Assembly (NCBI RefSeq): GCF_032062105.1
Contig: NW_026924588.1
Location: 1 to 64,000 of the forward strand
Direction of reading: 5' to 3'
DNA: 64,000 bases
Source: Saccostrea cucullata
Taxonomy: Eukaryota
Positions 3,070 to 61,619 of the stretch are shown here, piece after piece. Under the pieces are notes generated by a model. The model was given only the letters and a program-made list of their open reading frames with translations, was not told the origin of the DNA and did not search any database. The position numbers and the translations under genes are program-made. Positions within the stretch are counted from its first letter, which is position 1. Every line of letters starts with the position of its first letter.

Positions 3070-6000
3070 ATGGCTTCACCTTCTAATGTACCTCCGGCTA
3101 GAGCAAGTTTAGCTACTGGACCCCCAGCTACTGTGTCACCAGAGGAAACTAATTTTCTACGATTCGTCAATCTGGTCCTGAAGAGAGCACCAAAGGCCCT
3201 GAGGGTCCATTTTGATACAGTGCATCCTCCAAATAACCTTGTTTCTGTCCTAACAACACAAAGACCTACTCTGTTACGCTTGAAATCAAGAAAAATAATA
3301 AACCAGGTTCAGTGGGACACACTTTTTGGAGGTATATTGTAAAAATGTGTAAGAAAGTGTTTAAACATGTTCCTTTCAATATCAAACAACTTCACTACTT
3401 CAAAGATAATATTTTATGTTCAGTAATTTTATTAATACGAGTAAGTAAGCAAATAAAGAAGGGGATCAGAGTATACAGCAAATCGGGAGATTATATCCCG
3501 TCCCTGCATCTGCAATTGTAACAATTTCATTTTTTTCTACAGAAAATGATTGTAAAGATCTTTGATCAAACTGTTTCAGTTTAACACTTAAAACTTAATG
3601 ATACAAGATTAAGATCTTTCTCTCTCTTTAAATTTCCAAATTTCATTTTCAATTGATTTAGTTAACAATCCTGTGTCAAAGGACTTTGATGTTACACTAT
3701 TAATCTGCCTTTTACGTAACATGAGTCCCTCTACACCAGCACCAGCAGGAGGATTCGATGTTCTACCCAATTCATCAGATGTTAGTACTGGGGCTGACTT
3801 AGCAAGAATTAAGTTCTACAGAAACACAGTGGCCCATTCGTCAGGTGCAAGAATGACCACAAATGAATTTAATACTAGCTGGAACGACATTGAAGGGGTA
3901 AGAAAAAATTCTTTTGTCATTCTATAGTCTATGTAGAAACTGATTGATATAGGAGGGATATGATTACCGTTCCATACCCTAAAAGTTCGTGTTTCCATAC
4001 CTCAATTCCAATGGTTCTTCTGAAATTTACCAAATTGTGAGTTACATTCCCTAAAAGAGATTTTATGGACAGGGGTTCAAGTAAGTAGGAAGTTACCATG
4101 AATGAGTTCAATTAACCATAGCAAAATACAAAGAAAAGTGAGAATTTAAAAAAAAACTAAATGTTCTGTTTGTCTACAACATTTTAGTTTAAACAACATA
4201 TGCATAATCAATGGAAAAAATAAAGAGCTCATGCCATAATTTGATTAATGATTAATTTACAAATACCTCTTTAGCATATCAATATTAATTTATTTTCCAA
4301 TACAGTTGAATAATCCACAATATATATCAATTATTTTAGGCTATTGGAAGACTTGGAGGTTCTGCATTACTAAATGAAGCTCAAACTTTAAGGGTGACCT
4401 CAATCGATGACTCTGAGAGAGAACTTCTTTTAGAGCATTTACTGGAAATAAGACGGCTGAGATTGGAACGGTTAGAAACGATACCCTGGAATGTTAGAGG
4501 TAATCTTTGTATACCACTTGGATATATTAAGAAAAACTCAATCATTTCTCATTCATAAAGCTGATAAGACACAAATTCAATGTTGATATTTTCTAAAATT
4601 TTCTGTAAAATTCTATAACTTAAGTTAAAGATAAAAATTGTGAAGATGTAAGGATGTGTCAATCAAATGCGTCTAGAAATTTGTAGTTTCAAAAAATTTG
4701 AGAATGAATAAGATTTTTATAATAATGTCGTATGAATTGTAGGAAAACATATAAGTTATGGAATTATACAGATATTTTTTAATTAACATCAAATCCATGG
4801 CTATGCACATTTAAAGTAACATTGGTTTGTAACTCTTGGATTTTACATTTGATATCAAATTTTTTTTTAATAAAAATAATGATTTCTTATGATGAACAGA
4901 TAAATAAAATTCTATATAATAAGCAAATCTTTGCTGAAGTTTTGTCTAAACTGCATGCCTAATAAGATTTTAAAATATCCTTTTACTCATTGCAAACATT
5001 GGGTAACTACTTTCAAAAATCTTAAATGATCAATGTTATCTGTAGAAACGCCAAAGGTACATGTATATATTAATGATTAGAGATCTACAAATATTTTACA
5101 GTTAAAGTATATCATTGAGACAGTTAGATTACAGTTCCCCTCGACCAGGACTATTTCCCGAGGCTGCGTCTCGGGAAATACTCCTGGACGAGGGAACTTT
5201 GATTTTGCTGACCCCCTCAATGATATATGTATTTTAACTGTTTTATTATACCGATACAAAAGTGAAAAAAGTAGAGAGTTACAAATGACAGGGAATTAGC
5301 TTCCGAACTTACGCATGCAGGATTAGTCCATTAACTTTTGGACCGACATAATAAAATATAGACTTACTGAAAAATGGGGTATTAGCTTCCGAAGCAGGGA
5401 TTAGCTCATTTGACTAACGCATGGGGATCAGCCAATTCACAGAGATTTCTGGGGAAATATTCACATTGTACTAACTAACTTTTATATAGGAAAAAAATCA
5501 GCAGAGGTATGATAATTCCAGTTAATTGTATTTTAAAGTAATTGTATTTATAGTAAAAAAAAGGTTGTAAATGTAAAGATCAAATAAAATCTATTATTAA
5601 ACCTCTACAGATTTTCCTTACATAACAATAGATCATTAGATCTCACCAAAACCCTAGAAATCGGTATGAATGGACTATAAATATCCCTGTGCGTCAAGTC
5701 AAGTGAGCTAATTCCTGCTTGTAAGGCTAATTCCCAATTATCGTAATTGAAGTACGAGTAATCATTTAGATTTTACTTATACATTGGTATGATATGTGAG
5801 TGGACTAATTCCCTTGTGTTTGTTCAATGAGCTAATCACTGCTTTGAAATCACCCTATTTGAATCATCTAAAGGTTGCGTTTAGCCAATCAAAAAGTGTT
5901 TTACAAAACAATTGCATTAGAATACTAATTTAATATGTAACATTTTAATCAAGCTTATTTAAAAGTTAAAACTGTTTAGAGTTTGCATATATCATACGGG

Positions 6001-9000
6001 CCCATAACAAGTCATAATGCGAATTTTTACGCAAGTAGATAACACTATATACTCGAGTTTAAATTATCTGAAAGCAATTGTTTCAATTTTATAGTATTTG
6101 GGTGGGATAATTTCTGCATTTTTCAAGGCACTTCCCCTAGGCCAGGACTATGTTCCCCGGTTTCACCTCGGGAAATATAGTCCTAGCCTTGAGGAACTGG
6201 AATCTTGTTAACTCCCTTAATGATATACTTAAATTAAATTACACAAGAACTGTTGATTTAAACAACGTTAAAACATATATATCGGTATAATGATATACTA
6301 ATCTGTGCAGCAAATATCTTTATTTACTTTCCTGATTTTACTCATATAGAATTAATTGAGGAGAAACTGGAGTCCTGGGAAGAAGAGGATCAAGTATTTG
6401 TAGAAACGAAATCATCCACAGCTGTTGAAAAATTCATTAAAGAACACCCATGTGTTGTGGTGGTCGGTCATCCAGGATCAGGAAAGTCAGCCATCATTCA
6501 TCACATCGCTCTTAAAATGAGAAAAGAAGGTTTTTCAGTTATACCTATTCATCGCCCTGGTGAGATCACGACTTATCACAACAGAAAAAATCCTCAAGTC
6601 TTTGTTACCGATGATCCATGTGGTGAATATACAGTTAATGAACATGTTTATGAATGGGCTAAGTACTCTGAAGATATTAAAAAATGTCTAAATTTCAAAG
6701 GAAGGGAAAGACAAGTAAAGGCAAAACTTCTTGTTTCCTGTCGGTTAGCATTGAGCTCAGTTCGCACATTTAGAAAGATTAAAATATTTTCAAATTTTAT
6801 ATTCAATTTAGAAAACCAAGAAAATCATTTATCATTTATTGAGAAAAAACAAATTTTGGAAGCTCATGTTCAGAGCGAACTAGATTTACCAAAGCAATTG
6901 TTTGAAAAGCATATTGATTGCTTCCCGTTGCTTTGTAAGCTGTATGTAAATGCTTGGGCTGATCCAGATCGTTTGGTAACTTTTTTTGATAATCCTTTCA
7001 TTCAGTTGGTTTCGAAGTTTGACTTGATGATAGACGATCCCAAACCAGAAAGCATTTACGAATATTGCTCTCTAGTTTGTTGTTCCCTTTCAGAAGACAA
7101 ACTTGCTTTATATCTATCTGGAAAGGAAAACTCTGAAGACTTTGGGTGCCTTGAACAAATTCACAATGCTTGTGAAGTAGATCTCAATCCCTCAGAATTA
7201 TTATCAGCCGTCAACAGACTTGTTGGAAAGTATATCAAACAAATAGGTCAAATATTTTCTGTAATACATACAAAACTGCTTGATATAATAGTTTGGCACT
7301 TTGGAAAACAATCACCGGAAACATTGATACATCATTCACCATTAGAAATATTTCAAAATAGGCTTAGACCTTTTGGAAGATTAGAATGTGATGATAATGA
7401 AGATTTGTTCCTAGTAGAATTGGACGAAAGTACCTTGACATCTTATGTAGAAAGAATACAGAAAGATTTAGAACAAGGGATAGTTCTTGAAGTTTTTGAA
7501 AACCCAACTCTGCCAAAAGCACAGATTGAATCTTGTCTGTATTCTTTGTTAGAAGATAGACATGTCTTGGATAAAGCACTAACGAAAACAGGCCGAAGCT
7601 TGTCATCAGGTACAATAGACTCTATGAATTCATTTTCGAAGAAAGCTCTATTAGGAAATAACCGAATTTCATTTCATCATTTAATTATTGCATACAACTG
7701 GTCAACATTTTTTGAATATCTGTTCCAAATGGAAAATGAGACTCTCTTTCAAACATTATTTGATCAAAAGGCATGTTCAATATACTTGGCTATTCTTAGT
7801 GAAAATATTGAAATAGTTCAACGGTGCTTTGATTACTATATTCAAATTTATGAAAATGTTCACTATCTTATGGAAGAAATGTTTTCAGATGATAATTGTT
7901 TGTATTGTGACTTTAGTAAAGAAAGCAAAATCCACGAAGATCATTGTCCAATTGCACGAATCCCATTGCCAATTCTAGTTTGTATAACGGGAAAAATAGA
8001 AATATTGGAATTCCTTATCCAAAAGAAAGTCTGCTCTCAGGAAGATCTTACCTCAAATGTTCATTTAATGGATGAAATGGTTTCACCTTTAATGGTTAGC
8101 AGTTTTTATGGGCATTGTGATCTTACTCATTACTTACTATCAAAAGGGGCATCCGTGAATTTTCAGAATGAAGTCGGTATTTCTGTACTCCATGAAGCAT
8201 GTCGGAATAATCATGTTAATGTAATTAAATTATTACATGACTTTGGAGCTGAAGTAGATATCAAAGATAACAATGGTGAGACACCATTCTACCTAGCATG
8301 CCGAAATGGTTCATTGGAAGCTGCAGATCTTTTGATTACTCTTGGGGCAAATTTCAATTTACAAGACAACCTTGGATGGACAGCTTTACATTCATCTATT
8401 TTTTCTGAGCAGAAAAGAATGACTCAATTCCTAATTGAAAAAGGTTGCGACATTAACTTAATTGCTAATGACGGTGAAACTCTTTTATCGTTAGCATGTT
8501 CTCTTGGAAATTGCGATACCATCAAGTCGTTACTAGAAAAAGGTATTAATATACAACATCAACAGAATTTACTTTTGAAATCTTGGCAAACTGGAAATAA
8601 AGATGTCGTTTCTATGTTATTGGAACAAGGACTGGATATAAATTATAGGAATGAGATTGGTTTGACAGCACTACATATCAGTTGTGCGTATAACAACCCA
8701 GAACTTCTTCATTATCTGCTCTCCAAAGGAGCGTGTCCAAACATTCTTACAAAAGAAAATCGAACTTCTTTGCATATTGCTTCAGAAAATTTATCAGAAG
8801 AATGCATCTCAATTCTTACAAAACATGGGGCAGATATAAATGCATTAGATAACGAAAATAAAACAGCTCTACATTACGTATGTCGAAATCCAATCACTGA
8901 ACGATTTTTTACACACGACGCAAGAGGAAATGACAGTTGTTTCCTTGAGGAACTGAAAGAGTTAACGTACGTTCAACAGCATGACTTAACTTACTGTCAA

Positions 9001-10688
9001 CAGAATTCTGCACCAAATGTTATTACAATTAATACATCGGATATTACCAGATATATAGAATACTGTCAGTGTAACGCAAGATTAATTGAGAAAATTGAAA
9101 GGATAGTCGATATACTTATACAAACTGATATCGATATAAACATCGCTGACAAAGATGATTTAACTCCCTTACCTATTGCTTTTTTTGGGAATTTTTCAAA
9201 GGTCATCGAAATGCTTTTGAAAAACAATGCAGTTGTAAATTTGGTGGACAAAGATGGACAAACACCTTTACATATGGCTTGCATCAATGGAAATTTAAAG
9301 GTTTTGATGTTACTTATACAAAAAGGAGCAAATGTGAATATTGCAGACAAGACCGGATCTATATCGCTACATATCGCTGCACAGAACAACGATATTGATA
9401 TACTTTCTTGTTTAATTTCTAATGGGGCAAATGTGAATCAACAGGACCACCAAGGTTTAACACCACTTCACATTTCTTGTTACAGTGGCGATATAGATAT
9501 TGTTAAGGAACTGTTAAAGTCTAATGCAGATGTCAAAATGCATTCCAAAGGTGGGGTTAATCCTCTAACGGTTTCAGTTGCAAACGGCTACTATCATATA
9601 TCGGACGAAATTCTAAAAGAAGGTGTTCACATACTTGATATGAATTTTTTGCATTTGTTACAATCTGTCCAGTGTAAATCGAATATTTGCCAAATTTTGG
9701 ACAGGTACAGTGATGTCCTTACGTACCGAAGTAGTGATGGACAGTCACTTCTGCACATAGCAATATTGGAAAAAATACACAATGGGCTAATGTTCTTCTC
9801 TCTAAGGAGAATTTTACTAAAGTGTTAGTCAACGAAGGACATATGCCCTTATTTTACGCAATTGAACATGGGTTGCAAGACATTATAAAATTACTTTTGA
9901 AAGAAGACTTGCCCGAAGCAGTGAGAATTGAATGTCTTCGCATGGCAAATATAAACGGTAGAAAGGATACTGTATCAATACTGTTCAAAAAGTATCCTGG
10001 TTTACTGGATAATTTAAATGGGAGTGACTATAGAATGGTACCGAAGTTGCTGAGAACCCATAGTGTATACAATAAAATAATGGAAAATGCTTTAAATAGC
10101 AGAAAGTACCTTGAAATATACAGCATTATTCTTGTTGATCTTCCAGATGAATTATGGAACCTTCATACAAGCACAGTACCATGTCTATCTCCAGAAAACT
10201 GTATGACAAGCGACCACAATTGGTTAGAGGAGAAAACAATAATTGATAAAGTGAGATATATTAGAAATTTAACAGTTTTATCCCCCTTGGAGATATGGCC
10301 GCTTCTGTTTTGTTCTGATAATCCAATATTAAAAGGTTTATCATTTTTGGAATTTATTAGTTTTGCAACAGATATTTTTTCATTGAAGGATGTCATTGGA
10401 AATAGCATTTTACATTATATGTGTTTAATGGAAAATGAAGATTTATCCCGAATTTTCTTAATGGAAAATGAGGATTTATTCGACATTTCTCCTCTCAAAA
10501 ATAAGACTAAGATCTTAAGATCTTCTCTAAGAACGCTTATCAATATGCAGAACCTTGCGGGATGTACACCCCTCCACTACGCAATAAGAAATCGTGGTAC
10601 ATTTCGTTTACTTGTTGACTTTGGTGCTGAAATCGGAATTAGGGACAAATCTGGTCATGATGCTGAACATTATATTGGATGTGAATAG
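3070..10688 (+). CDS. HEPN (DZIP3-like) - STAND NTPase (nSTAND3-like) - ankyrin-repeat protein, paralog 1 (~1665 aa if one frameshift is repaired)
   Basis: Phase-consistent GT-AG exons 3070-3331, 3662-3897, 4340-4499, 6350-10688. HEPN motifs DFDVTLLICLLRN and RIKFYRNTVAH (RxxxxH at 3820-3837). Walker A GHPGSGKS, Walker B VFVTDD. Many TPLHxA/GAxVN ankyrin repeats. One base is missing in the A6 run 9770-9775; the shifted frame continues to align with paralog 2. Confidence 0.85.
5105..5228. repeat. Long imperfect palindrome (hairpin) in intron 3; related copy at ~6130-6230
   Basis: TATATCATTGAG...GTTCCCCTCGACCAGGACTATTTCCCGAGG-ctgcg-TCTCGGGAAATACTCCTGGACGAGGGAAC...CTCAATGATATA. Confidence 0.75.
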
Positions 10689-10935
10689 ACACTTTAAAAT
10701 ACTCCTCTTTGCTGGGTTTTATAAACTGACTAAAAATAACACAAAGGCACAGCAAACCGTAGCAATCCTTGACCTTGACAAGGAGCATATTATATAAATC
10801 AAACCAGCATTCGACATCGATTCCAATGAAAATCTCTTCATTTCTACTTTTGTACATGACTACCGCACTCACAAATGAACACACCTGGTCACATTACTTT
10901 ATCCTATCCAACTCCCTCTTTATGAGATTATGAAA

Positions 10936-11113
10936 TACTGTGAACCAATTTTTATTCAGAAATATTTCTCGCCGCGAACTGGTCCTTAAAGTGGATGTGT
11001 CTTTTAACAACAGATCGAAAAAGGCTTGATCGCGAAAATAAATCGCCGTGAACTAGTTTATACCTGTTAAATCGCGAAATAAAGTCGTAGGAAATAAAAG
11101 TTGTTTGACAGTA
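10936..11113. mobile_element. Short MITE with TACTGT...ACAGTA ends
   Basis: Imperfect TIRs TACTGTGAACCAATTTTTATT / AATAAAAGTTGTTTGACAGTA. Related end types at 32799-33018, 36611-36813 and 61620-61852. Confidence 0.6.
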
Positions 11114-11209
11114 TCTGGAAACAAAAGCAAAACGTATTTTCTAAAAGTTAATTTGTAAATTAATGAATAAGAATGAAGGACATTGATCGTTATTTGTACA
11201 ATGTATTAA

Positions 11210-11542
11210 GGTCAGACGATACGTTGCTCTCATATATATCTTGCATCGCTTAGTATTATATAAAAAAATTGTTCATATTTGTCATTATCTTTTGATTTTT
11301 ACATTGATTTTAACATTGTTTTCAAAATGTTTTTAATTATAAGTACACCGAAAATTGTGTCATTAGCTATTTAGAATATTAACCATAAAGGTTTTATAAG
11401 AAATATGACGCTATGGTGTCCTGGCCAAATGCTTGGTAAGGTACCCTAATTTTTTTTAAGAGGAAACTTGTTTGAGTACCTATACTTCAATGACAAATTC
11501 TTAGAAAAAATTATATAATATTGAGGAACGTGTCATCTGACC
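11210..11542. mobile_element. MITE with TTAA TSD (Kolobok-like ends)
   Basis: TTAA-GGTCAGACGATACGTTGCTC ... GAGGAACGTGTCATCTGACC-TTAA. Confidence 0.75.
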
Positions 11543-11546
11543 TTAA

Positions 11547-12443
11547 AGTCAATGTTCAAATGAAGGCATCATATTTTTAATTTTGAACCTTCAAGTGAAC
11601 AGATGGTAGAAGTATTGTCAAACTTTAATATGGGTGTAAATCTGCTACTTTGGTCATAGGAACCATGAGAAAGCAAATTCTGCAATGAAAGTACACAACA
11701 GAATGCTAATTTACAGACTTGCGAGGGAGTTAAAAGTTAAAGGCACCATAAATGACACATGACTTAATTCTGGTAATAAGACCAAGGAGTGCTCGTACCA
11801 AAGAGAACATTAATTTCATTGATAGAGTAATCACTGAAACTTTATAAAAATCCCACAGACGGGTACTGCCTAAACTAGATGCATATGGTACTATTGGTAA
11901 ATCTAGTGTTCATAAAATATTCAAATTCGATTTAAAACTGATTCCTTACAAGATAATTGTAATGCAGCATTTGATAGAGACAGAAATTAGATGTCGTTTA
12001 GAGTTTGCCTATTGGATTTTGATTATATAGACCAAACTCTGCAAATTTAACAGATGCATGGTTTTCCGATTAAGCCCACTTCCATTTTAACAAAATGTTA
12101 TTGAAGCGAATCTTACGTTCTTGTGTTTGTTGAAACTCGATTTAATTGTGGAAAAACCTGTTAGAATGTTACATATAAAACTTAGTAAAAAAACTTAAGA
12201 AATCGTGTTCAAATAATATTAATTCCAAGGGATTTAATTTGGAACATGCTGTAAAATGTCATATGTTATGAAGTTATTCTAAAAAAAAAATTGTTGATAA
12301 TTAATAAGGAAATTGTAACAAATGTGTGCTTGACAAGAAATTCATAACAATTTTATTAAATATTTTTAATTTTATTAATGTGACTTGAAGATTGGAATTT
12401 TTATAACGGTTTAAAAGTGTAAAATATGTTTTGGGACACCCTG
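11547..12443 (+). pseudogene. Decayed Tc1/mariner transposase relic with right TIR
   Basis: Broken frame containing DAWFSD*AHFH (~12053-12085), resembling the WFSDEAHF catalytic motif. Right TIR TTAAAAGTGTAAAATATGTTTTGGGACACCCTG-TA is shared with 777-1404. Confidence 0.7.
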
Positions 12444-13550
12444 TATATAATTTCAATGTCGTCTATTTGATTGTGGATATGAAGGACAGTTTCATTAACA
12501 CCAAATTGTGATAACTGTAAAATAATGCTGTTTTGTGAAATTGTGTCATAGCCTTCATCGTTCAGTGTGTTTGTAATATATTCAAAAGTTTGTGATGATG
12601 TTTATGGAATTATTTCAATGATGTACTTTTAGCAGTTCTTAAAATAAAAACAAAATCAACACGTTTAAGCATGTCATAAAATAATTTGCAGAATGCATCT
12701 GGTTCAACAATAATGTGATTACCTTAATTATCAATCTGACAAATCCCCTTTCTTAATACCGTCTTTCCATTAAATACCCCCCCCCCAAACTTTAAGCCCA
12801 GTTTCGAAGAATCTTCGTGCAATGTAATAAACAAGGATTCATTTGCGGTAAGCGTAACTTAGAAGCTATATCATACTTTGAATCATTATTTAGTATTAAT
12901 ACTGAACGTCCTTATTGACCAAGGCGTAAATATTTTTCACGTTAATTTGCGTCAAAATAATATTAATAATGTCCAACCATTACAGGAAAACACATTGATA
13001 GAAACAAATCAAATGCATGCACATTTTTTTTAATTTTCCCCAATTCATCCAATTATCCGATATTATTTCCATATTCAATCTAAATACATGTAAAAAACAA
13101 TACTTGTGATAGAAATTGAATTTTTTCATGATCTTCTAAATTAACCGTGTAGAAGAATTTGAACTTCACTATAACTTTCACAGTTTTCAGACAATATCAA
13201 CATATAGGTGAAAAATGCGATGTACGTTTTTATCTTGCTTATTAAAAAAAATTCAAAACGTTAGTTTTATCTTTTAAAATGGAATTTCACAAAAGGCTTC
13301 ATCATACAGTTCTTTAAATTTGACAGAAAACATACAATATGTTCATTATTAGAAGAAAAAAATCAACGTTTCATCAAAACCTTTTTTTTTCAAATTCATT
13401 TTATTGATTGCTGACCGAAGAATATTCATTTGCATCGATAAGATGTCATCCATACCCTTTATTGTATTTAAAGATCTAATTCATCAGCAGTTTATATACA
13501 TGTTTTGACAGTTCGAAACAGAATGAATAACATGATCAATATACATAGAG

Positions 13551-14100
13551 AATAATACATACCCTTTTCCATATCACATCCTCTATCAGCCTGAGACACC
13601 AATACCAGCCAGAGGGCCGAAGGCCCGAGAGCTGCTATTGGTCGAAGGCTGATACGGGATGTGATGTGGAAAAGGATATGTTTTATTATATTTATTACAT
13701 ACATAGTAATACAATACAGAACACATTAAGTTGAGAAGAAAATGAGTAAATAATCATGCACGGACTTCTTAAAATGTACACAGTCAAAAATTGTCTCATA
13801 CAGTTTCGGTTTGTTTCTGCATGTACTTCTATTTCAAATGTCCCCAATCAGTAATTTAAAAATAATCTATTATTTATCATTTAGATTATCATTACATTCA
13901 CAAAGTTAAAATAAAGAGAATTGTGTAACCCCAAAATATATGTGTATGATCACAAGTACTAGTACTGTTTTTTGAGGTTGAATTTACTAGGGGTGTGATA
14001 ATGATCCGTATCAGCCCTGCAGGACTGATACGACTATTGTGACGTCAGCCGTATCGCATATGCAAATATCCTGTAATTATTATTAAGTATGTAATAAAAA
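13551..14100. mobile_element. Hairpin-bearing non-autonomous element, unclassified (possibly Crypton-type)
   Basis: ~135-bp imperfect palindrome 13551-13687 centred on GGGCCGAAGGCCC, followed by TTTATTACATA ... TATGTAATAAA inverted pair (13693 / 14088). Confidence 0.55.
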
Positions 14101-16383
14101 TGTATATTTGCCCCAGCTCATTAAGTATCAACGACACATCTTAGACCCAAACTACACGGTTATATATACCGAAAGGAAAAAAAAAACGCCGGGTAGCATA
14201 ATATACGAAAAAAATTGACCGCATGACCGAAAATTACGAAAATCGGTCAGATGAGAAATTTAGTTACTATGCACCAAAATCAGTGTTCAGAATTACTCAA
14301 CCGTAAAAAGGAATGACGTCACGTAAGGAAAATGCTAAAAGGTCCAAAACACGTGCAATTTGATGATGGCGAGTTTCTCACCAAATCTTGTTGCACCATT
14401 TGATGCATCTGATGTATACACATCATTTTCAATATTTAGAGACAATATAAATTTCTTAATACAGTTAACGGAAGTTACATCTGGTCTGGTTTTTGACTAG
14501 CCTATTTAATAAAATTGGCAAGAACGGGTACCTAAGCAGTTTCTTGTAAAGAAGAAGGTATGGTTTCAATACAAATCTTGCCCCGTGATTTTCTTAAAAA
14601 TTAAACTGATGTAAAAAAAATGAAAACACTTGTATTTTTAATCATTGAAATTCCATGCATAATTTTTCTACAAATTATGTTTCTTATATGCATTTCTAAA
14701 TGCTAATTGTGACGTCATAAACATGTGCATTTTCCCGTATTTTCTTAAAATGTTGCAGAAGACACCAATTTTCAATTGAATTTTGTTTCAGAAAATATTG
14801 TCCACAGGCATCGCCCACAAAGATTTTGAGATATGTGATTTTTCATTGTATTTTGCACAACATATCCAAAAATTAAAGTGAACCCTAGCTGTGGATACTT
14901 TTTCTCACGGAAAATTCCCTTTGAAATGGTCCATTTTGATGCTTTTTCTGTTTTGAATAGAGAAATGCATCAAAACAATGATGTCATAATTCCAGAACGG
15001 TACTCCTTCATGCCATAATCTTTCCAGATTTTTCACAGCCATAAACTCGAATAATATTTATGAAAGCTTCAGAACTTTTTGAAAACATTACACTTTTAGG
15101 AAACAATTCCACTATTTGGGTTTTGAGCCGCTCAACTTACTAGATTGTGTTTCTCTCACTGACCCATCCAAATACAGCTACAGTTTGAAAGATAAACATT
15201 CTGATGAATTCCGTGCAAAGAAGAATCCAGGTTGTGAGAGATGCGCGGGGAAGACATTGAAATTTATAAGAGTATTTAATTTTCTCATTTGGGGGGGGGG
15301 GGGGGGGGGGGGGGGGCTTTCGTCATATGAACTTCAATAACTATGAGACAAAATCAAATAGGATTTTGGTTTTATCTTTTTGAAAGATAATTTTAAAAGT
15401 TAGATAGGAATACTTGAAAAATAAATTTAATTCACCTCAAAGTTTACCATGCGATTCTTTTTCCTTTCAGTATTTTTTTTATAATTTCACAGAAATATGT
15501 ATCTTAAAATTAGCGTCAAACACAGAGACAGATGCGCACGAGATTTGCATTCGTATTAGGCCTCCTTAGCTGCTGACCTATCGACCTGCCTCATTTACAT
15601 TCCGGCAGAATTATCAAGAAATAAATCCACCCAACTTTCAAACAGTTATCACAGAGAAAAATAATTAGAATTAGAAATGGAATCATAATGTAATAACATA
15701 ATAATAACATAATTTAACATAATTTTGACGTTTAAAACCTTTCATTGAAAGATGACGGTAAATTTATTTTGCCATTTTGAAGTGTAAAACAACATCACAA
15801 GGCGGTTATACGTTTCCGTTTCATCTACGATGTCAGATATGGGCGTTATTAAGTAAATGTACCCATTTTTGAATTATATTTTCTTATAAGATCGGTATAA
15901 CTTGCATGTTAACATGAATAAGTCGCATGTCTTCGTAATTATTTTGCATTTTTACATAATTTATCTTGCATGTAGGGAGCAGAAATATGCCACCATAATA
16001 AAAAAAAACTTCCACGTACACACGTTACCTTTCTCCATTTCTATTTCTTAATAGAATATCATAGTGATTTGGTCCATGATATATTTGCAAATACTTACTT
16101 TTCAAAATATGTATCCTTAAAGCTATATGTTCCAACTATCCGCATTGTCGCCACGTATGAAATCGGGGACTCGAACGTGGAAAAATAATAGTGATCGTAT
16201 CTAACAACAACAAATCTTGTGTTCACTCTTCGCTCTCGTGTTGATCGTGAAATCTCTTTTGATTGTCAAAATTATAATCGTTCTCATCGCATCAGACCGT
16301 ATTATATTGCATCGTAACTAACGTCAGCTGCATCGTACGTAAACGGATCTAATCTGGCTTTCATATCGTGATGACACCGAAGC

Positions 16384-16745
16384 TGTGCTGAACCAAGTTA
16401 TAATTATTTGTCATTAAAACTTATTTTATAGTCTCTTTTATTTCTTAATTCTTTTTTTTTTTTTTAGAAATTAGGACCATACAAATTAGCGCGTGCTCGC
16501 AAGGAAGAAGGTTACCACGCAATTCATTTTCTTCTCATTCTCATCTTCATACAATTTCTGCTTTCTCTCTTTTTCAAGACGCCTCAGTAAAACATTATTC
16601 CTGTTCAAAAATCCTAGCCACCCACGAAACACAACCACAGAAATCGTCAATTTTCAATATCTCGGTGAACTCAATTTTCTTTTGGCGTATGATCTCTACA
16701 GACAAAGTATTCCACCACTTGATCTGTTCAAAAGACCAACTCTTC
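16384..16745 (-). pseudogene. Degenerate copy of the last exon and 3' UTR of the multi-HTH gene
   Basis: Same-orientation similarity to 30822-31257 (TGTGCTGAAC..AATTATTTG.CATTAAAACTTA, AAATTAGGACCATACAAATTAG, CTCTCTTTTTCAAGAC, GATCTGTTCAAAAGACCAACTCTT). Confidence 0.8.
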
Positions 16746-18164
16746 TACCCTGCGTGTATACAACGCAAGTACATGAAAGAGTTTGGCGCAAGACAAGGCA
16801 ATTGTGTAAACAAAAAAAAAATGCAAACTAAGATTATCAGGTAGCACAGGTAGCTGGCCTATCAAAAGCTATAATTGTTTTTTAATAATTGACAGGCGGT
16901 AAAGATTGATCTTGAATCAGGTAGATTTTGGTGGCTTTCACATAATATTGGGTGTTTGAATCGTGTTTAAGATGCACACCTAGCTAGAACTAATGCTGTT
17001 CATGAGTTTTTTGGGACAACTCTTAAAGTTGTGTTTTGTGTTTTATTTGAACCAGAGCATTACATCTAATAGGGTTACAAAATATGTACATAAATATTTA
17101 AACATAAGATTTGCACATGATAAATGTAATACATGCTCTGCAAACCAAGCTGCGTGTTGAAGTTAAGGTTCTTTGATTTTTATGAATATTAAAAGAAATC
17201 ACTCACAGGTATACCCTTTAAAGCTTTTGCTAACTCCGAGCACTGTTTTTTTTTCAGAGTCGAGTTTGATATATAACGTGTATATTATATGAGTAAGGTT
17301 GAGTAAAATTATCTTTGTTGAACAATCCTGTGCTCTGCTTCAACTTAAAAAAATTATTTTGAACCTCTTCACAGTTTTCATTTACATGCGATTGACCAGT
17401 TAAGAATCATAACAAGCCACGTAGATTTGTGTCGTTACCGGGTAAATGCCTGCAGTATAAACGTGCTTGCAAGCTCTCAGTTGAAACGTACTCATTTTTA
17501 TATATCGTTAAGTGTGGACTTGTCTGGTTAATCTAGTTATAGTGTTTTAATGCTTATGTTTTATAAATAAAAAATTGTATTTGTAGTTGATTTTGAATCG
17601 TGAACATATAATTCGTCTTCGTCATTAAAAGAAAAATATCATATATCAAGAGTATTCTTTTAATAGCATCTAATCGAAATATCTCCTCCCATTTCCTTGT
17701 AAAAGAGAAACCGTAGTCTTTTGGGGGAAAATGTTCCTGCATTTTTTTTACTGTGATGGGTGTTAAAAATTGGCTTGAATTTTTTATGTTACATTATTCC
17801 ATTATGAATACAACATGCTTGAATAATAAATATTTTGTTATACACAATGAAATAAAAAAAAATACTCTTTGCTTATATCCTACCAGTATACTAAGAGTGT
17901 AAAAAGGGACCACGCTACTATATTGTTGATGCCCTGGCATACCCAACAAACCACTAATACACATTGGTTCCTGAGATGTACTAAACATCACCTGCATGTG
18001 GTATTTTCATATGATGGTTGTCCGGTATAGTCGTGGACAAATTCTCTAGAATGAAAAATAATCATTTTTACACAAACAATTTCAAAGAGAGTTATTAATT
18101 TTGCAAAGTTTTACAATAATCTGAAGTTTTTGGTCTAAGTCGTAGTTCTTCTGTTAAAAGCTTC

Positions 18165-18423
18165 GTGGGGATCCGGGTTAGAATAGGTCCTCAGTTCCCC
18201 TTGCTTTTCGTAAAAGGCGACTAAATGGGGCGGTCCTTCGGATGAGACCGAATAAACCGAGGCCCCATATGACAGCAGGTGTGGCACGATAAGGATCCCT
18301 CCCTGATCAAAGGCTGTAAGTGCCGAGCATAGGCCTAAATTTGCAGCCCTTCACCGGCAATGGAGACGTTTCCATATCAGTGAAATATTCTGGAGCGGAA
18401 CGTTAAACAGTATACAATCAATC
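18165..18423 (+). mobile_element. SINE with Deu/Nin-like core, same tail as 175-449 but a different 5' region
   Basis: GTCCTTCGGATGAGACCGAATAAACCGAGGCCCC..GGCACGATAAGGATCCC..GCCGAGCATAGG..CGTTAAACAGTATACAATCAATC. Confidence 0.8.
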
Positions 18424-19654
18424 TTTTGTAAAACGGGCCCCTGATCTCTAGAATGACATACAACATAGAAATCATATGACATTAAGCTTGATTTTCTCTC
18501 AGGATTGAATTTTTAATGAATTGGTTACAGTTTATGCGCAAAACCACTTTTCATCACATAGTTTCATTGTGAGAAGCTGAAAACATTGGCAATTCGAGAC
18601 AGAGCATTAAGAATAAACGGTAAAGAATCAGAAAACTAGAGTAAAATTAAACGCTTCATTAAAATAGTCGTACTGTAAAATTTTTAAAAATAAAAAAATA
18701 CTCACTTAAATAAGTAAAATGTACAGCTACCAGTGTCTGTTTTACAGAGACAAAAGCAGGTGGATTTCAATGAACGAAAAAAATATTACGGCTATATAAA
18801 TGGGTACGGTCTTTGGCGACAAGGACTTACAACAACCAATGTACTGTGTACCAAAATTCGACAAATTATCATTCATGATGTTTTATTGACTTAATGACTT
18901 TGCGACAAATACATGTAACACATTTGATAGACATCATTTAAAGATTTGAATTGAATTGGTACATTGTTGTTACAATTCTGATTCGGGGAGGCAGTAATTT
19001 TTAATCGAAGTTCATTAATGTTTGGTTAGTTTAAATTTGAATAGAGTAAATTGTCCTAACGGCAAGTTGTTTTAGAAGTAAACCGTCCAAAACATTCTTG
19101 TGCACCCGTAACCTAATCTTTGCCCATGGCATCCTTTTTGGCGCCACTGTTTTCTGAGTGGATCTCAGGGTCCACGGAATCAATATCTGTTTTGAAAACT
19201 CAGTTGCGCTTATTTATGGTTGTGTAATTTAAATTAATAGTATGATTTAAGACGAATATTCCATTTACAATACCTCAATAATATAAGTATACGGATATTT
19301 GTACAACAAATTGATTACCCAGTGATGTTAAAATGAAATTGGAAAATCATGCAAATTAAGAATGCAGATTTGAAAGACAACGAGAAAAAAGAAGGCATAT
19401 AATGTTTGCAAACTTGAAACAGTTCTGTAAATTGACACTCAAAAAGTCTTGTATGAAATACAATGAGAATATACTGTTCATAATAATGATAATAATAATG
19501 ATAATAATAATGAATTTAAAAAAAATGTTAAATTGATATCTAATGAATACCAAAATAGAGCCTCATATATATAGTCCGTAAATGGATTGTAATGAACTTC
19601 TTTTTTCGGAGAATTAAGACAACATACCAAAACAAAATGTTTTCTAAAGTATCT

Positions 19655-19947
19655 TTTTTTTTTTTGCTTGTTTAACAATTCTCAACGAAATTTTCATCCA
19701 TATTGTGTCGTCATAATTTGCCGGTTGAGGGTTGCAACTTTAGACCTTTACTTGGTACTTACGGCCATTGAACAGTAAGGAATCTTGTTGGTGCTACCAC
19801 ATACTTCGACACGGGGCCTCGATTTAACCGTTTTAATCAAAAAGACTGTTTTCCACGACAAACAGTGGATTCGAAGCCGCAAGGTGAGGATAAAATGCTT
19901 ACTCCGTGACTCTGCATAAAACGCTCTAACCACTGAACCACGTGGGC
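19655..19947 (-). mobile_element. Diverged full-length tRNA-derived SINE of the same family
   Basis: On the minus strand: A-box TGGTTCAGTGGTTAGAGC, degenerate B-box GCTTCGAATCC, core GAGGCCCCGTGTCG, A-rich tail. Confidence 0.7.
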
Positions 19948-20195
19948 TCATTATAAATATGAGAAATCTTTCAGAGTTCAATTAAAATACTTGCAAATCT
20001 ATTTCCCTTTTCTGATTTCAAGACAATGTATTAAAGCAAGGAATTGATAAAATGCATCAATGACATTTATATTGTGATGATGCATTTCAATATCATACTT
20101 TCTTGCTTATCGTTTTTGTACATTTTTCAAAGTAATGTTATGCTGCGAAACAATCCACGTCATGGATTAAATAGACATATCACTTAAACACCTCA

Positions 20196-23100
20196 TTAAC
20201 GTCTGTAGGTATCATAGCGTTTTAGGATTTCTTCTGTGTCCTGAAAACCATACGCTTTAGAATAATCTAGAACATCCCGACCAGATTTATCCTTAACTTC
20301 AATATCTGCACCCAATTCTATTAGTGTTGATATGTTCAAAGGACAAGGACACTGTACTGCATAATGAAGGGGTGTACAACCTGCCAAGTTTTGGCGATTT
20401 ACATGCTCATCTATTGACAACAAAAAATCTCTCTTGAAATGATTAAAACAATCAAACGTAAAATACATATTTGGAATTAAGGAGCTATAATGCAAGAAAG
20501 TATTTCCAATAGCATCTGTGATTGACAACAAGTTCAAATAATCATTCATTGGATATCGGAATCTTTCACCAATGTATCGCATTATCAAATTGCAATCTTT
20601 TCTTAAAATCAAAAGTGGCCAAATCTCAAACTTGGAGAGCATGAAGAGGTTTAGATCGAAAGGTAAACATTTCTCTATTTCCTCTCCTTGTTTTATCCAG
20701 TTCTGACTACTCGTTTCTCCACGTTCTGGACAGAGACAAGGTATTATACTTTTGTGAAGGTTCCATAGTTCATCGGGAAGTCTTGCAAGAATAATATTGT
20801 ACATGTCAATATACTTGCCGCACTTTAAAGCTTCTGTAATAATTTTATCATATCCAGAAGAACAATATTTAATTGTAAAATCCGTCAAATAGTAGTCCTT
20901 TACATTTCTCATAAACTTACGGACAATGTCATGATTTCCACTATCGAACACCATTTCGAATTCATCAAAATGTAGCCGAGAAATTTTAAACAAAGTCTCT
21001 AAAAAACAAATATAACCCCTCTGTAATTTCTTTCGTAGATTTAATGTGATAGCGTCTCCAGACGTGCACCTTTCAAGAAACAAATCAATAATGCTGGCCA
21101 CTTCACTGTATATCGCGTATAAGAAAGCAGTTTGTCCTCTGTTGTCAACTTCTTTAAATAGTTCGGTCTTATTAAGTAAAGTCCCGACCCAATATGAATT
21201 GTTGTCTAGCGTTGCGATGTGTAAGATGGATTGGCCCTTTTTATTTCTGTACTTATTAATCGTACCTCGATATTTGTTCAAAAACTTAAAAATGTCATTT
21301 GTATTTATAAAACATTGTAACAAATACCTTAAATTGTTTTCATACAGATGAGCTCCATTTTCAAACAATACATCACTAATGTCATAGTGATGACATTTTA
21401 TTGCCATGGTAACAGCATTTACACCTTCACTTATTTCTATCTCATAATCAGCCCCAAACCTCAATAATATCTCCACGATTTCATTATAATTTTGGCAACA
21501 ACAGAGTAACAATGGTGTAAAACCATCATTATCCCTTGCATTAACATTTGCCTCATTATATAGCAGAAAATAAATAACATCTTGACGTGTATTCTTTATT
21601 GCGATATGCAATGGAGTAGACCCAGTCTTGTCTGGAATATTAATCTTTGCACCATATTTTACTAGTGTTGACACTACCTCCAAATTTCCTATAACGCAAG
21701 CTAAATGAAGGGGACTGGAACCATGCACATCTGTAGCGTTGACGCGACCTCCATGCTCTATTAGCAATTGCACTGGAAAGAAATGGCATTTAAAGCAAGC
21801 TATATGTAAAGGAGTGAAGTCATCTTTGTCGGATGCATTTACATTTACTTTATTACGAAGGAATTCTTTGACGATTTCGGGAAAATTTCCGGAACAGGCT
21901 GTATGTAAGGGTGTTTGCCCATTGATGTCTGCCGTGTTAAGATCGATCTTATTTTCAATAAGAATATCTGTTATTCTTTTAAGCTTATTTAAAGCTTCTT
22001 GATTAGTTGAATCCTGAAATATATTATTTCTTCCTTCGTGTTCAAGTTCCATTTCCTCTTCTTTCGAAAAGTACCAATCAAAATCTGTTAAGGCATAATG
22101 AAGAGCTGTTCTCCCTTTATCATCAATTGCCATTATTTCTGCTCTGTTTTGTAGAAGAATTGATAAACATTTTAGCGATAAATGCTTTGCTGAAAATGAA
22201 GAGGTGTTTTTTTATCCTTTGATTGAATATTTGCAACCACCCCTTTACGAAAAGATATGTTACAAGATCTGCATTGTTCTGTGCACAGCTAATGTGGAGA
22301 GCTGTAAGACCTTGAGTATTCTTCCAATTTATCTCCGCTCCATACTCCAAAAGTATTGAAATAATACCTTTATTTCCTTTCACGCAAGCTTTCAGCATCC
22401 CATCCTGTAATTGTTGCCTGTTTATTCCCTTCTCAATTAACAATCTAACGATAGCACAATTTCCATAAAAGCAGGCCAGAGAAAAAGGAGTATCACCTCT
22501 TCTAGAAACTATATTGATATCACAATTTCTTTCAGTAAGGAATTCGACAGTCTTTATGTTCCAATCAGATATAGATTTATGTATTGGTGTCAATCCTTGG
22601 GAGTCTTGCAAATTAATGTCTGCACCATTACACAAAAGTTGGTCAGCAATTTCTATGAAATCATTCCTGCAGGCGAGGGAAAGTGGCGTTTCCTCATCTG
22701 TATCTCTTGAATTAACTTTAGCCCCATTGGAAAGCAATATTTTTATAACTTCTAAATGTCCTCTTTGACAAGCTTCATGAAGAGGTGAAATTCCATTTTC
22801 ATTTTGATAGTTAACAGATGCCCCCTGTTGAAGTAAATAACGAACAATACTGCAATGCCCATGCAAACTGGTCACCATTAATGGGGAAACCGTTTCTTCA
22901 AAGAGTTGATATTCAGAAATGAGGTCCTTTTGTGAGCAAACTTTTTTTTGGATAAGATATTCCAATATTTCCAGCTTACCAGTAACACAAACAAGTAGAG
23001 GGATTCGAACTTGTGTAACTGGACAGTACAATTTATGACTCAAATCTGTTAGGTGTATGCCGCAAAACAAACAGTGAGTATCATACGTTATTCCAAAATT

Positions 23101-26100
23101 CATGAATTCCTCCAAGCTATCAAAAGTCTCACTATAATATTGGAGACACATTTGCACAATCTCAATATTTTCACTTAGAATCGCTAAATGTAGCGTGCTT
23201 GCTCGTTGGGAAAATAGAGTTTCAAACAAAACATCATTTCGTGTTTCAAAAAGTTTTTCTAAAAATGCTGCCCAGTTGTAAGCTATTGTCAAATGAAGAA
23301 ACTTTACTTGGCTATTTTCCAATAAATCTTCCCTTGAAAATGAGGCATATGCTTCAGTAATAATTGATGGTATATTAAGATTTGTTTTTAAAAGCGTTTC
23401 TTCTAAAATATGTCCATCTACTAATGAGTCAAATAGACAAGTTTCTATTAGAGCATTTGGCATGCATGGGTTCTTAAATATATTTCTGAAATTCCCTTGA
23501 CTGATATCATTCTGTATTCTTTTAGAGTAGAATTTCATCCACTTCTTGTCTAATTCTAATAGAGTTTTGTCTTCCTTGAAATCAAAATCTTTCTGTAGTC
23601 TCCCTTGTGGTCTAAGTCTGTTTTGAAATATTTCAGTACATGAGTGAAGAATCAGTGTTTCAGGACATCGGTTTCCGAAATGCCACACAACGACTTCCAA
23701 AAATTTTGAATGTATGAGCGCAAATGTACAACCCACCTTTTTAACATATTTACCATTCATCCTTTCCAGTGCTGAGAGTAAATTTGAGGAATCAATCTGC
23801 CTATCACAAGCATTTAAAATTTCTTGAAGATGTTCATCAGCAACATTTCTCTTAATACCCATTACATATGAATTCACCCTTTTCTCTGCAAGGGCACAAC
23901 AAACTAAAGCGCAGTATTCATGAATGGCTTCTGACCTAGGATCATCAACCATTACGTTAAGCTTAGAGACTAACTCAATGAAAGGATTCTCGAAAAAGGC
24001 TTCCATGCATGCTGAATCAGTAAATGCATTAGCATATATTTTACAAAGGTATGGAAAGCAATCGAAATTCTTTTCTATTACCAATTGAGGTAAATGAACT
24101 TCGTGTTGAACGTGCACAGACAATATTTGCTCTTTCTCGAATACAGTTAACTTATTTTCGTGATTTTCTAAATTGATAATGAAATTGGAGAAAATTTTTA
24201 TTAAACGAAACGGTCGAGTACGACTTACGACAAAACGACATGAAACTAAAAGTTTTGATTTAACTTGATCTTCCTTTTGTTGAAAATTCAAACATGTTTC
24301 GATGTCTTTTGAATACTTAACCCATGCACTAGCTGCTTGTTCGTCAACAATAAATTCTCCACAAGGATCATCAATCACAAAGACTTGTGGATTTTTTCGG
24401 TCGTGATAGCTTTTAATTTCATCGGGATGGTCAATAGGAATGATAGAAAATCCCTGTTTTCCCATTTTTAAGGCGATGTGATGAATGATGGCTGATTTTC
24501 CCGACCCTGGATGACCAACAACTACAACGCATGGATTGTCATTTACAAAGTTTTCAACAGCTGTGGACGCCCTTATTTCTACAAAAAGTTCATCTTCTTT
24601 TTCCCAGGATACTAGTTTTTCTTCAATCAATTCTACATATGATTAGAAAAGCAAAATACAACTCTCATTACCTCTTCATATTTCAATTTTGCATGATAAT
24701 AAACTATTAAAAATATTGACATTTGCCCACTATATGTATATTACTCTTTTTAGTTCTAAATATCATTAACTGAAAGTTTAACTAATTACATAATTAGTAA
24801 ATAAATTAATAACTGATTATCAAAGTAAGAATTAAAGCAAAGTTATAATTTACCATTATTACTTTTATAGAGGGAAAAATATTTCAGCATTTTTTTTTAT
24901 TCTTAAACAAAGATCACCTCTAACATTAGGAGGGATTGTTTCTAACTGCTCCATTTTCAGATGTTTAATTTCGAGAAGAAGCTCCAGAAGAAGTTCTTTC
25001 TCAGATTCATCCATTGGAGAAAATCGCAAAGCTTTGGTTTCATTCAGTAATGCAGAACCTCCAAGCCTTCCAATAGCCTGAAAAGATTTGATTTTCAGAG
25101 TGGTTAAAAACACAGGTAATTTGTTTTTGAAAATAAATTTGTTGTGAAGATCTTGGTACAGTCATGTCTATAAAACAATAAATGTCATGTCTGTTAAAAT
25201 ATAAAAGATTCGGTCAAGATTTAAATATATTAAAAAGAAAGTCAATTTTAAGGCCAAGGACAAATCAATGATACATTCACATTGTCACAGGCACTGCACA
25301 CACGGATTATCAAAGTTGTTAAAAAATGTGTCATCAATCCACCTTTTTAAATGTAAGTTAACATGTTTTTTCTCTGTTATCAATATTTTTTAAAATTCTT
25401 TTATGTTGCTTAAAATAATTTTCCTACCTCCTCAACATGTGTCCAGCTAGTATTAAAATCATTTGCGTCCATCCTTGCATTTGCTGAGTGGGCAACTTCG
25501 TTTCTGTAGAACTTGATTCTTGCTAAGTCAGCCCCAGTACTGACATCTGATGGATTGGGTAGAATATCGAATCCTCCTGCTGGTGCTAGTGTAGAGGGAT
25601 TCATGTTTCGTAAAAGGCAGATTAACAGTGTAACATCGAAATCCTTTGACATAGGATTGTTAACTGAAACAATTGAAAATGAAATTTGAAAATGTTTAGG
25701 TAAGAGAAAATGTGAGATATTTAATAAATCTTTTATCATTAAGTTTCAAAATGACTTTGAAAGTGCAAATTTGCAATCATTTCCTGTAAAAGAAAATTTG
25801 TAATTGTAATTGCCAAATAAATGCAGAGTACATATCTTTTGATACACCTTCAGACCACAGTCCCTCGATTTATCTGCTCAAGAACTAAATACATATTTTT
25901 AGAATAAATAATTAATCCTAAATGTTATTTTTGATTTAGTGAAGTTGTAAGATATTGACAGGAATATGTTAAAACACTTTTTGAATACTATCTTGAACAT
26001 ACCTTTGAAAAGTTTGTCCCACTGGACCTGATTTATTACTTTTCTAGCTTTCAAGCTGAACAGCAGAGTTTTTTGTGTTGCTAGGTCAGTGACAAGGTTA

Positions 26101-26267
26101 ATTGGAGGATGAACTGTATCAAAATGGATCCTTATGGCCTTTGGTGCTCTCCTCAAGACTAGATTGACAAATCGTAGAAAGTTAGTTTCTTCCGGTGACA
26201 CAGTGGGCGTGGATCCTGTGGCAGGGGCTCCTCTACACGGAGTCGCAGTAGGAGTAGATGACGCCAT
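20196..26267 (-). CDS. HEPN (DZIP3-like) - STAND NTPase - ankyrin-repeat protein, paralog 2 (~1699 aa if two frameshifts are repaired)
   Basis: Exons 26267-26003, 25663-25428, 25077-24918, 24632-20196, with the same intron positions and phases as paralog 1. RIKFYRNEVAH, GHPGSGKS, VFVIDD and ankyrin repeats present. Two 1-nt deletions in T4 runs (~22250-22253 and ~22193-22196) split the last exon. Confidence 0.85.
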
Positions 26268-61000: not shown

Positions 61001-61598
61001 GAAGTAATTTTAGCGATATTAAAAAACTCATTAAAGAGGCCATGACAAAACACAATTCATTTTTTAGCGATACTTAATTTCAGCAATTTCAGCACCCTGG
61101 CTAATAATGCCAAAATTAAATCCACACAAAAAATTCTACTTATACGGTATTCAAGTTTGGGCAATTTCCCCAGCTTTTCCAGGAAAGGTAAAATAAAAAA
61201 TTATCTGGCTACTCTCCCTTCAAAAAGGATGCTTCGTTACTGAACTAGACTTCATTTTCTGTCATCAGATATCGGGGAAGGAAGATTGAAGAAAAAAAAG
61301 TATGAATTAATGTATGATCATAAAACTCTGCTGATTATAAACTATTTTTTGAATTTTTTTTTTCCAGAAAAAACGCGATCAAACTCGGAACAAAGCGACC
61401 AATGAGGAAGAAGTTTCTCAACAGGAAGTTGAAGAAGAGGAAGTAGTTCCTGAGGATGCTGAAAGTGAGGCTGTATCTGAAGATGAGGACTCGAGATGTC
61501 AGAATGATGACTCGATATCTCAGCGAGATGGGGCCTTTTCTCACAGTGAAGACTCAAACCCTCAGTACACTGAAAAGAAAGGGGACAAGCAGAGTGAG
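52003..61598 (+). CDS. Inverted paralog of the multi-HTH gene (first 9 exons; probably continues beyond the window)
   Basis: Exons 52003-52184, 53651-53725, 54286-54344, 55686-55745, 56315-56403, 56662-56727, 57729-58043, 60487-60882, 61368-61598 each match the minus-strand exons in sequence and phase, with no stops. Confidence 0.82.
52496..52868. mobile_element. MITE with TTAA ends
   Basis: TTAAAGCCATATATGGCGTAA / TTACGCCATATATGGCTTTAA perfect inverted ends. Confidence 0.8.
52957..53310 (+). mobile_element. Miniature non-autonomous LTR retrotransposon with tRNA-like LTRs (Ajax/Cassandra-like TRIM)
   Basis: LTR1 ~52957-53078; LTR2 53187-53310 (TGTAA...TTACA). PBS TGGTGCCATTGAC at 53083; PPT AAGGAGGGAGGAA at 53174-53186. 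CATG on both flanks. Each LTR has A and B boxes and a cloverleaf. Confidence 0.85.
55727..55837 (+). repeat. 44-bp tandem repeat spanning an exon end and splice donor
   Basis: ATACCATTAAAGATGGAGG|GTAA at 55727, 55771 and 55815. Confidence 0.9.
58086..58664. mobile_element. TIR element, unclassified
   Basis: AAGAGCAAGAGCCA ... TGGCTCTTGCTCTT inverted ends; absent from the paralogous intron. Confidence 0.55.
59061..60341. mobile_element. Tc1/mariner-type MITE with ~470-600-bp inverted arms
   Basis: TA-CTCACAGTCAATAGAAACGCAACACC ... GGTGTTGCGTTTCTATTGACGGTGAG-TA; arms pair inward to ~59530/59735. Confidence 0.88.
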
Positions 61599-61619
61599 GT
61601 AATTAAGGCTTACGTCTTA

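Follow-up and report, generated by a model that had tools for sequence, protein, structure and literature searches.

The window analysed here, the whole 64,000-nucleotide stretch of Saccostrea cucullata DNA (contig NW_026924588.1), is free of N and contains two convergent genes, gene A on the plus strand (3070-10688) and gene B on the minus strand (26267-20196), which are the RefSeq loci LOC134266774 and LOC134266775. Both encode an N-terminal HEPN_DZIP3 domain followed by an nSTAND3 NTPase and a long ankyrin array. Each gene has four coding exons, and all six introns are GT-AG, with phases 1, 0 and 1 in each gene. Translations of our local splices were identical, in every residue, to RefSeq XP_062604983.1 (1378 amino acids) for gene A and XP_062604985.1 (1056 amino acids) for gene B. 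Pfam and similarity searches were run per exon, while the joined splice was used for the frame check and the RefSeq comparison. An earlier note, made from the sequence alone, had proposed the four-exon splicing and read both products as an effector, a switch and a sensor in one chain. The splicing is borne out by the GT-AG introns, the RefSeq identity and the RNA of gene B, and the anatomy by Pfam, exon structure and fold; the profiles it had named for checking the spliced proteins, HEPN_DZIP3, nSTAND3 and Ank, were all matched in the exon-wise searches. The parts of the two genes are as follows.

3070-3331, plus strand: gene A exon 1, start codon and N-terminal HEPN helices (weak HEPN_DZIP3 match, E 0.0035; equals RefSeq XP_062604983.1)
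3662-3897, plus strand: gene A exon 2, HEPN_DZIP3 core with RNTVAH at 3820-3837 (Pfam, E 1.7e-23)
4340-4499, plus strand: gene A exon 3, final HEPN helix and helical linker (splice; helices in the paralogue model)
6350-10688, plus strand: gene A exon 4, nSTAND3, helical and winged-helix domains, helical arm, ankyrin array and stop (Pfam, paralogue fold)
about 6397-6873, plus strand: gene A nSTAND3, with Walker A GHPGSGKS at 6466-6489 and Walker B at 6598-6615 (Pfam, motifs)
about 8050-10650, plus strand: gene A ankyrin array (Pfam)
26267-26003, minus strand: gene B exon 1 (RNA coverage, RefSeq identity)
25663-25428, minus strand: gene B exon 2, HEPN_DZIP3 core with RNEVAH at 25505-25488 (Pfam, E 2.7e-23; RNA)
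25077-24918, minus strand: gene B exon 3, final HEPN helix and linker (RNA joint 24632-24918, RefSeq identity)
24632-20196, minus strand: gene B exon 4, nSTAND3, helical and winged-helix domains, ankyrin array and stop (Pfam, RNA)
about 24585-24106, minus strand: gene B nSTAND3, with Walker A GHPGSGKS at 24516-24493 (Pfam, motifs)

RefSeq, and RefSeq alone, also gives gene A an isoform X2, in which a cryptic intron in exon 4 (about 7610-7916) leads to a product of 659 amino acids that ends before the ankyrins. Sensor-less isoforms as a conserved feature were considered and set aside, since in a paralogue the short isoforms stop where the assembled copy has a stop or break, and the support in gene A is this single RefSeq model.

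The HEPN_DZIP3 profile (PF18738, cut-off 27) scored 83.4 and 82.8 bits in exon 2 alone of the two genes and was matched by all 66 aligned relatives. The R-N-x3-H motif is intact in both, as RNTVAH in gene A and RNEVAH in gene B, so that the HEPN domain with an intact RxxxxH described in the earlier note is there, at about 83 bits. In a census of 73 HEPN domains the arginine was kept in 97%, the asparagine in 100% and the histidine in 99%. The fold was examined in the AlphaFold model of a database paralogue, XP_062615008.1 (residues 20-560, predicted local distance difference test score 91.7). This entry is a RefSeq chimera of two tandem copies and inter-domain contacts in its model are not to be read; the conclusions on fold hold because the exons concerned are about 80% alike between the two copies. 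In the model the motif sits at the end of helix 112-127, and the HEPN part has a template modelling score of 0.92 to a predicted HEPN_DZIP3 model, with weak matches to other HEPN families. HEPN domains with an Rx4-6H motif are mostly RNases (PMC3710099). The domain is a probable RNA-cutting effector.

The switch lies at the start of exon 4, where nSTAND3 (PF20720, cut-off 27.2) scored 83.1 and 85 bits (E 2e-23 and 6e-24), and it carries in both genes the motifs GHPGSGKS, VFV[T/I]DD, LLVSCR with the arginine after strand 4, and CFP[L/Y]LC with the HD1 proline. Among 95-100 NTPases the Walker A lysine was kept in 100%, the post-strand-4 arginine in 99-100%, the HD1 proline in 99% and the winged-helix histidine in 95-97%. 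The best fold matches of the paralogue model were STAND proteins, over the NTPase, helical and winged-helix domains: 8bob (Z 14.3), NRC2 (13.7), NOD2 (13.3), NLRP9 (13.1), NLRP3 (12.9), Apaf-1 (12.0), SAMD9 (11.6), AVAST5 (10.6) and Avs4 (10.0), with 8bob, NRC2, NOD2, NLRP3 and Apaf-1 aligned over 260-297 residues at Z 12-14.3. Thus both profile and fold agree with the P-loop STAND NTPase that had been read from GHPGSGKS. A PDB sequence search with the NTPase gave nothing significant, and Foldseek with a 900-residue model returned ankyrin/DARPin matches only. Behind nSTAND3 exon 4 holds many ankyrin repeats (Pfam E down to 1e-81), the long array that the earlier note had described. The NACHT profile reached 13.4 bits against a cut-off of 26.7 and the Walker B reads DDPCG, the NACHT signature being D[GAS]hDE (10.1101/2022.07.19.500537). 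Pfam found no LRR family in either gene, ankyrin being the only repeat. The proteins are not NLRs in the strict sense, because the switch is nSTAND3 rather than NACHT or NB-ARC and LRRs are absent; the term NLR-like receptor, used for them before, stands as an analogy and fails as a classification.

RNA read evidence covers gene B, where RNA lies over all four exons and depth is near zero in the introns. The joint of intron 3 (24632 to 24918) was exact in RNA runs of three studies and that of intron 1 had the correct net length of 339 nucleotides; the joint of intron 2 was absent from the joint listing. The reads are 90-99% identical to the assembly and come from other animals, hence from other alleles or close paralogues, and splicing and expression hold for gene B or its close alleles.

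The anatomy of the genes was described correctly in the earlier note, but it made no mention of one-base frame breaks in the ankyrin exon, by which neither assembled gene is a single open frame.

9770-9775, plus strand: gene A, one-base frame break at an A run; an additional base in the three closest paralogues
22192-22243, minus strand: gene B, two one-base frame breaks, near 22192 and 22239, at or next to short homopolymer runs; an additional base at each site in RNA contigs and in paralogues

The extra base at 22239 is present in RNA contigs of two independent studies and that at 22192 in one study, and at each of the three break sites paralogues are longer by one base. Because the extra bases are found in RNA contigs for gene B and in paralogues for both genes, the breaks are probably assembly errors, and the unbroken products would be about 1665 and 1700 amino acids long, comparable to paralogues of 1672 and 1684 amino acids. 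Small introns at the breaks were ruled out, as relatives differ there by single bases only. It is improbable that both copies are instead recent pseudogenes or truncated alleles with real breaks. The breaks are present in the assembly and the RefSeq products are truncated at 1378 and 1056 amino acids, several paralogues carry genuine stops, the extra contig letter at 22192 differs from the homopolymer letter, and the RNA is from other animals and possibly, at 90-99% identity, from close paralogues. Nevertheless, each of the three breaks amounts to one missing base at or next to a homopolymer run, the missing bases recur in RNA and paralogues as described, and the frames past the breaks stay open to the common C-terminus for 288 and 645 codons with ankyrin matches, which argues against decay.

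Although the pair had been presented as a special find, it belongs to a very large, already annotated bivalve family with about 14 close copies, and its weight as a novelty is further lowered by SAMD9, which is already an animal STAND protein with a built-in RNase (PMC10246899). In the S. cucullata genome there are 891 HEPN_DZIP3 candidates, of which 150 were scored and all 150 exceeded the cut-off, and 675 nSTAND3 candidates; these are candidates, not confirmed genes, and probable uncollapsed haplotypes (e.g. L032/L033) inflate the copy counts. The NTPase region of gene A has at least 88 scored loci in the genome, about 14 of them close (56-84% identity, self excluded) and arranged in tandem clusters on five contigs, several of these copies with stops or breaks. 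HEPN_DZIP3 and nSTAND3 occur together in about 55 of the 120 database matches listed, most of them with ankyrins too, from Saccostrea, Ostrea, Crassostrea/Magallana and Mytilus, and the NTPase region was matched by 910 clusters at 50% identity. In some relatives CARD-CARD or SAM-CARD-CARD takes the place of HEPN ahead of the same NTPase, a kind of effector swapping that is typical of STAND receptors. In bacteria the proteins that look most similar carry nSTAND3, many of them in fusion with an Mrr nuclease. Neither HEPN-nSTAND3-ankyrin as a family nor a functional test was found in the literature searched, subscription papers being mostly outside reach, in line with the earlier statement that no functional characterisation was known.

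Two peculiarities were seen among the relatives. The closest NTPase relatives of gene A have an insertion of about 1.6 kb in HEPN exon 2 (L044:506-2122 and L045:501-2114). At LOC134276729 (C1128, 28-135 kb; L032, L034, L037, L040, L041, L047), RefSeq isoforms X1-X6 chain exons 1-4 from different tandem copies over about 106 kb, which may be read cross-mapping or real splicing across paralogues.

The modules of these genes evolve differently. Among close paralogues the ratio of nonsynonymous to synonymous substitution (dN/dS) was 0.21 in the HEPN exons, 0.17-0.18 in the NTPase and winged helix, 0.24 in the arm and 0.32-0.40 in the ankyrins and C-terminus, and amino-acid identity drops from about 80% in the HEPN/NTPase part to about 40% in the sensor. 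Purifying selection therefore acts throughout and the sensor is more variable. Synonymous distance, from slightly different gene sets, was 0.53 in the HEPN exons and 1.0-1.4 in exon 4. Genes A and B are 86% identical in the HEPN exons and 68% in the first kilobase of exon 4, and their first intron can be aligned. Moreover, trees of ten copies built from the HEPN exons and from the exon 4 NTPase rejected each other (approximately unbiased test, p 9e-7 and 3e-5). The HEPN tree is short and weakly resolved; it groups L039 and L042 at 100%, whereas exon 4 joins L042 to gene A. The incongruence of the two trees implies that effector exons were converted or swapped between copies.

The remainder of the window is rich in repeats. 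An apparently intact DIRS-like retroelement (45284-50167) has inverted terminal repeats and an internal complementary region, and around it lies a second inverted duplication, 41267-45002 and 54283-61600, with 71-88% identity in blocks. Their open reading frames (ORFs) are:

45530-46837: gag-like ORF of the DIRS-like element
46882-48894: reverse transcriptase/RNase H ORF of the DIRS-like element (Pfam RVT_1, E 1e-23)
48531-49706: overlapping ORF of the DIRS-like element, tyrosine recombinase-like by eye, without a Pfam match
41971-42339 and 60565-60891: CENP-B/Tc5 helix-turn-helix ORFs, one per duplication copy
42774-43136 and 57609-58181: unnamed ORFs, one per duplication copy

On the minus strand, two Brinker/CENP-B helix-turn-helix ORFs (31058-31519, 39626-39943) and a Ser/Thr-rich ORF (34854-36059) are possibly exons of one gene with several helix-turn-helix domains. 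In addition, there is an imperfect palindrome of 1.3 kb (59048-60354), and three minisatellite arrays (31846-32554, 37170-37932 and 39021-39487) have units of 34, 108 and 146 bp, the first with an inverted half.

Genes A and B combine this architecture with intact and selected catalytic and switch motifs and a STAND fold, within a family marked by expansion and by exchange of effector modules. A role as immune receptors has indirect support from the effector swapping, the large birth-and-death expansion and the conservation gradient from HEPN/NTPase to sensor. A STAND protein is kept in a closed state until sensing makes it oligomerise, and HEPN nucleases act as dimers. On balance we favour the view that the two proteins are autoinhibited receptors in which oligomerisation dimerises HEPN into an RNase. 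They would be cytosolic, self-contained STAND immune receptors; at rest, by analogy with NLRs, Avs and SAMD9, the ankyrin array and helical arm would keep the nucleotide-bound nSTAND3 closed. A foreign or damage ligand on the ankyrins would then cause nucleotide exchange and oligomerisation of the NTPase, and the oligomer would join the N-terminal HEPN domains, whose two R-N-x3-H motifs could form a composite metal-independent RNase site, as in other HEPN nucleases. Such a site might cut host or viral RNA and lead, as with those enzymes, to a translation stop or cell death.

Several observations weigh against this model. Expression of gene B was very low in two raw RNA runs (18 and 68 reads), dN/dS above 1 was not seen in the ankyrins of close paralogues at domain level, and a per-position test of how variable the ankyrin surface is anchored only six repeats. 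A PDB sequence search with the HEPN profile gave no significant match to a solved HEPN structure, and the fold lists were filled by the NTPase. Furthermore, the winged-helix histidine is kept, but the next residue, an aspartate in 86% of relatives, is threonine or serine in both genes and in 12 close paralogues. In plant NLRs, change of the equivalent aspartate causes autoactivity. With His-Thr or His-Ser instead of His-Asp, autoinhibition in this subfamily may differ. The literature searched also held no test of a HEPN_DZIP3 domain as an RNase and no enzymatic data on it, which would also suit a HEPN that is a non-catalytic or RNA-binding adaptor recruiting partners, as CARD does in relatives. 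Such an adaptor would fit with CARD and SAM domains holding the same slot, and with HEPN exons homogenised between paralogues, as suits a homotypic interaction surface. We consider it unlikely, since R, N and H are conserved at 97-100% across relatives only about 25-40% identical, as catalytic residues are, and since 194 of 202 pearl-oyster HEPN domains retain the motif (PMC9646362). The chain could also act, as sensor, switch and RNase, in stress or RNA surveillance outside immunity, in the control of transposons or in allorecognition, and not in pathogen defence. Some STAND proteins are indeed metabolic or apoptotic switches, among them 8bob (maltose regulation), the top fold match, and Apaf-1, and HEPN nucleases also act in stress and RNA processing (PMC3710099). 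Yet a set of hundreds of candidate loci, with tandem clusters, broken copies and shuffled modules, suits an arms-race repertoire better than housekeeping, and we hold this purpose to be of low probability too.

If the receptor model is extended to the family, bivalves would possess a repertoire of hundreds of Avs-like receptors with an HEPN RNase as direct effector, in which effector exons are interchangeable while the ankyrins diverge, a picture that we put forward tentatively. The interchange may proceed by gene conversion or exon swapping, and possibly also by splicing across tandem copies. If true, this would be an animal STAND system with an HEPN nuclease and a modular route to diversify. 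Should the proteins be ligand-gated RNases, they would make up a large and so far unstudied part of intracellular immunity in molluscs, the second case in animals, after SAMD9, of a bacterial-style sensor-switch-enzyme, and candidate resistance loci for oyster breeding. Classical NLRs are scarce in bivalves other than the pearl oyster, although these animals withstand heavy exposure to viruses and bacteria.

RNase L, an ankyrin-pseudokinase-KEN/HEPN protein activated by dimerisation with 2-5A as its ligand, likewise joins an ankyrin sensor and an HEPN-superfamily RNase in one chain, KEN being listed in that superfamily (PMC3710099); in contrast to our pair, the domain order is reversed, the switch has a kinase fold rather than STAND and the ligand is known. 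No description of an RNase L-type effector in bivalves was found in the literature searched. Parts of the pair and near-identical builds are already known bioinformatically, and the proteins already carry these Pfam domains in RefSeq. The earlier claim that DZIP3-like HEPN fusions have been described in invertebrates is thus correct: a list published in 2013 contains fusions of DZIP3 HEPN to ankyrin and NACHT and an expansion in the oyster (PMC3710099), oyster proteins that unite STAND, HEPN and ankyrins followed in 2021 (PMC8195603), and HEPN-NACHT expansions were reported in cnidarians in 2021 (PMC8260672) and as more than 50 genes in the pearl oyster in 2022 (PMC9646362). These bivalve and cnidarian HEPN_DZIP3-NACHT proteins (PMC9646362; PMC8260672; PMC3710099) share with the pair an N-terminal Rx4H HEPN_DZIP3, a STAND switch, C-terminal repeats and lineage expansions, and a putative RNase and immune role was proposed for them; the pair differs in its nSTAND3 switch and in an ankyrin sensor rather than LRR, TPR or WD40. 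The Crassostrea TRADD-N receptor-like proteins (PMC8195603) are also expanded in oysters and have a variable C-terminal region with STAND NTPases, HEPN RNases and ankyrins, but they possess an ectodomain, a transmembrane helix, DED and TRADD-N, whereas the pair begins directly with HEPN. Among bacterial systems, Avs5 (Sir2-nSTAND3-TPR) shares the Pfam switch family of the pair, nSTAND3 being the switch of this anti-phage protein (10.1101/2025.07.08.663546). Avs5 and Avs4/Mrr-nSTAND3 resemble the pair in their N-terminal enzymatic effector, repeat sensor and fold (Z 10-10.6), and differ in being prokaryotic, with an NADase or DNase effector and a TPR-type sensor; our genes are spliced animal genes, and in PADLOC no curated Avs model was matched, with matches confined to the P-loop region (best PDC-S73, E 6e-9). 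Human SAMD9/SAMD9L (PMC10246899, PMC13245274) are animal STAND-like proteins, SAMD9 also being a fold match (Z 11.6), and SAMD9 is characterised as carrying a built-in latent RNase effector that is freed on infection (PMC10246899). Their effector is a metal-dependent AlbA_2-type tRNase instead of HEPN, they have SAM and SIR2 domains and a TPR/OB sensor, none of which (the tRNase included) was found in the pair by Pfam, the Walker A lysine intact in the pair is replaced in SAMD9, and they comprise one or two genes compared with a large repertoire. Hence the oyster pair resembles NLR, Avs and SAMD9 in build and belongs to none of them.

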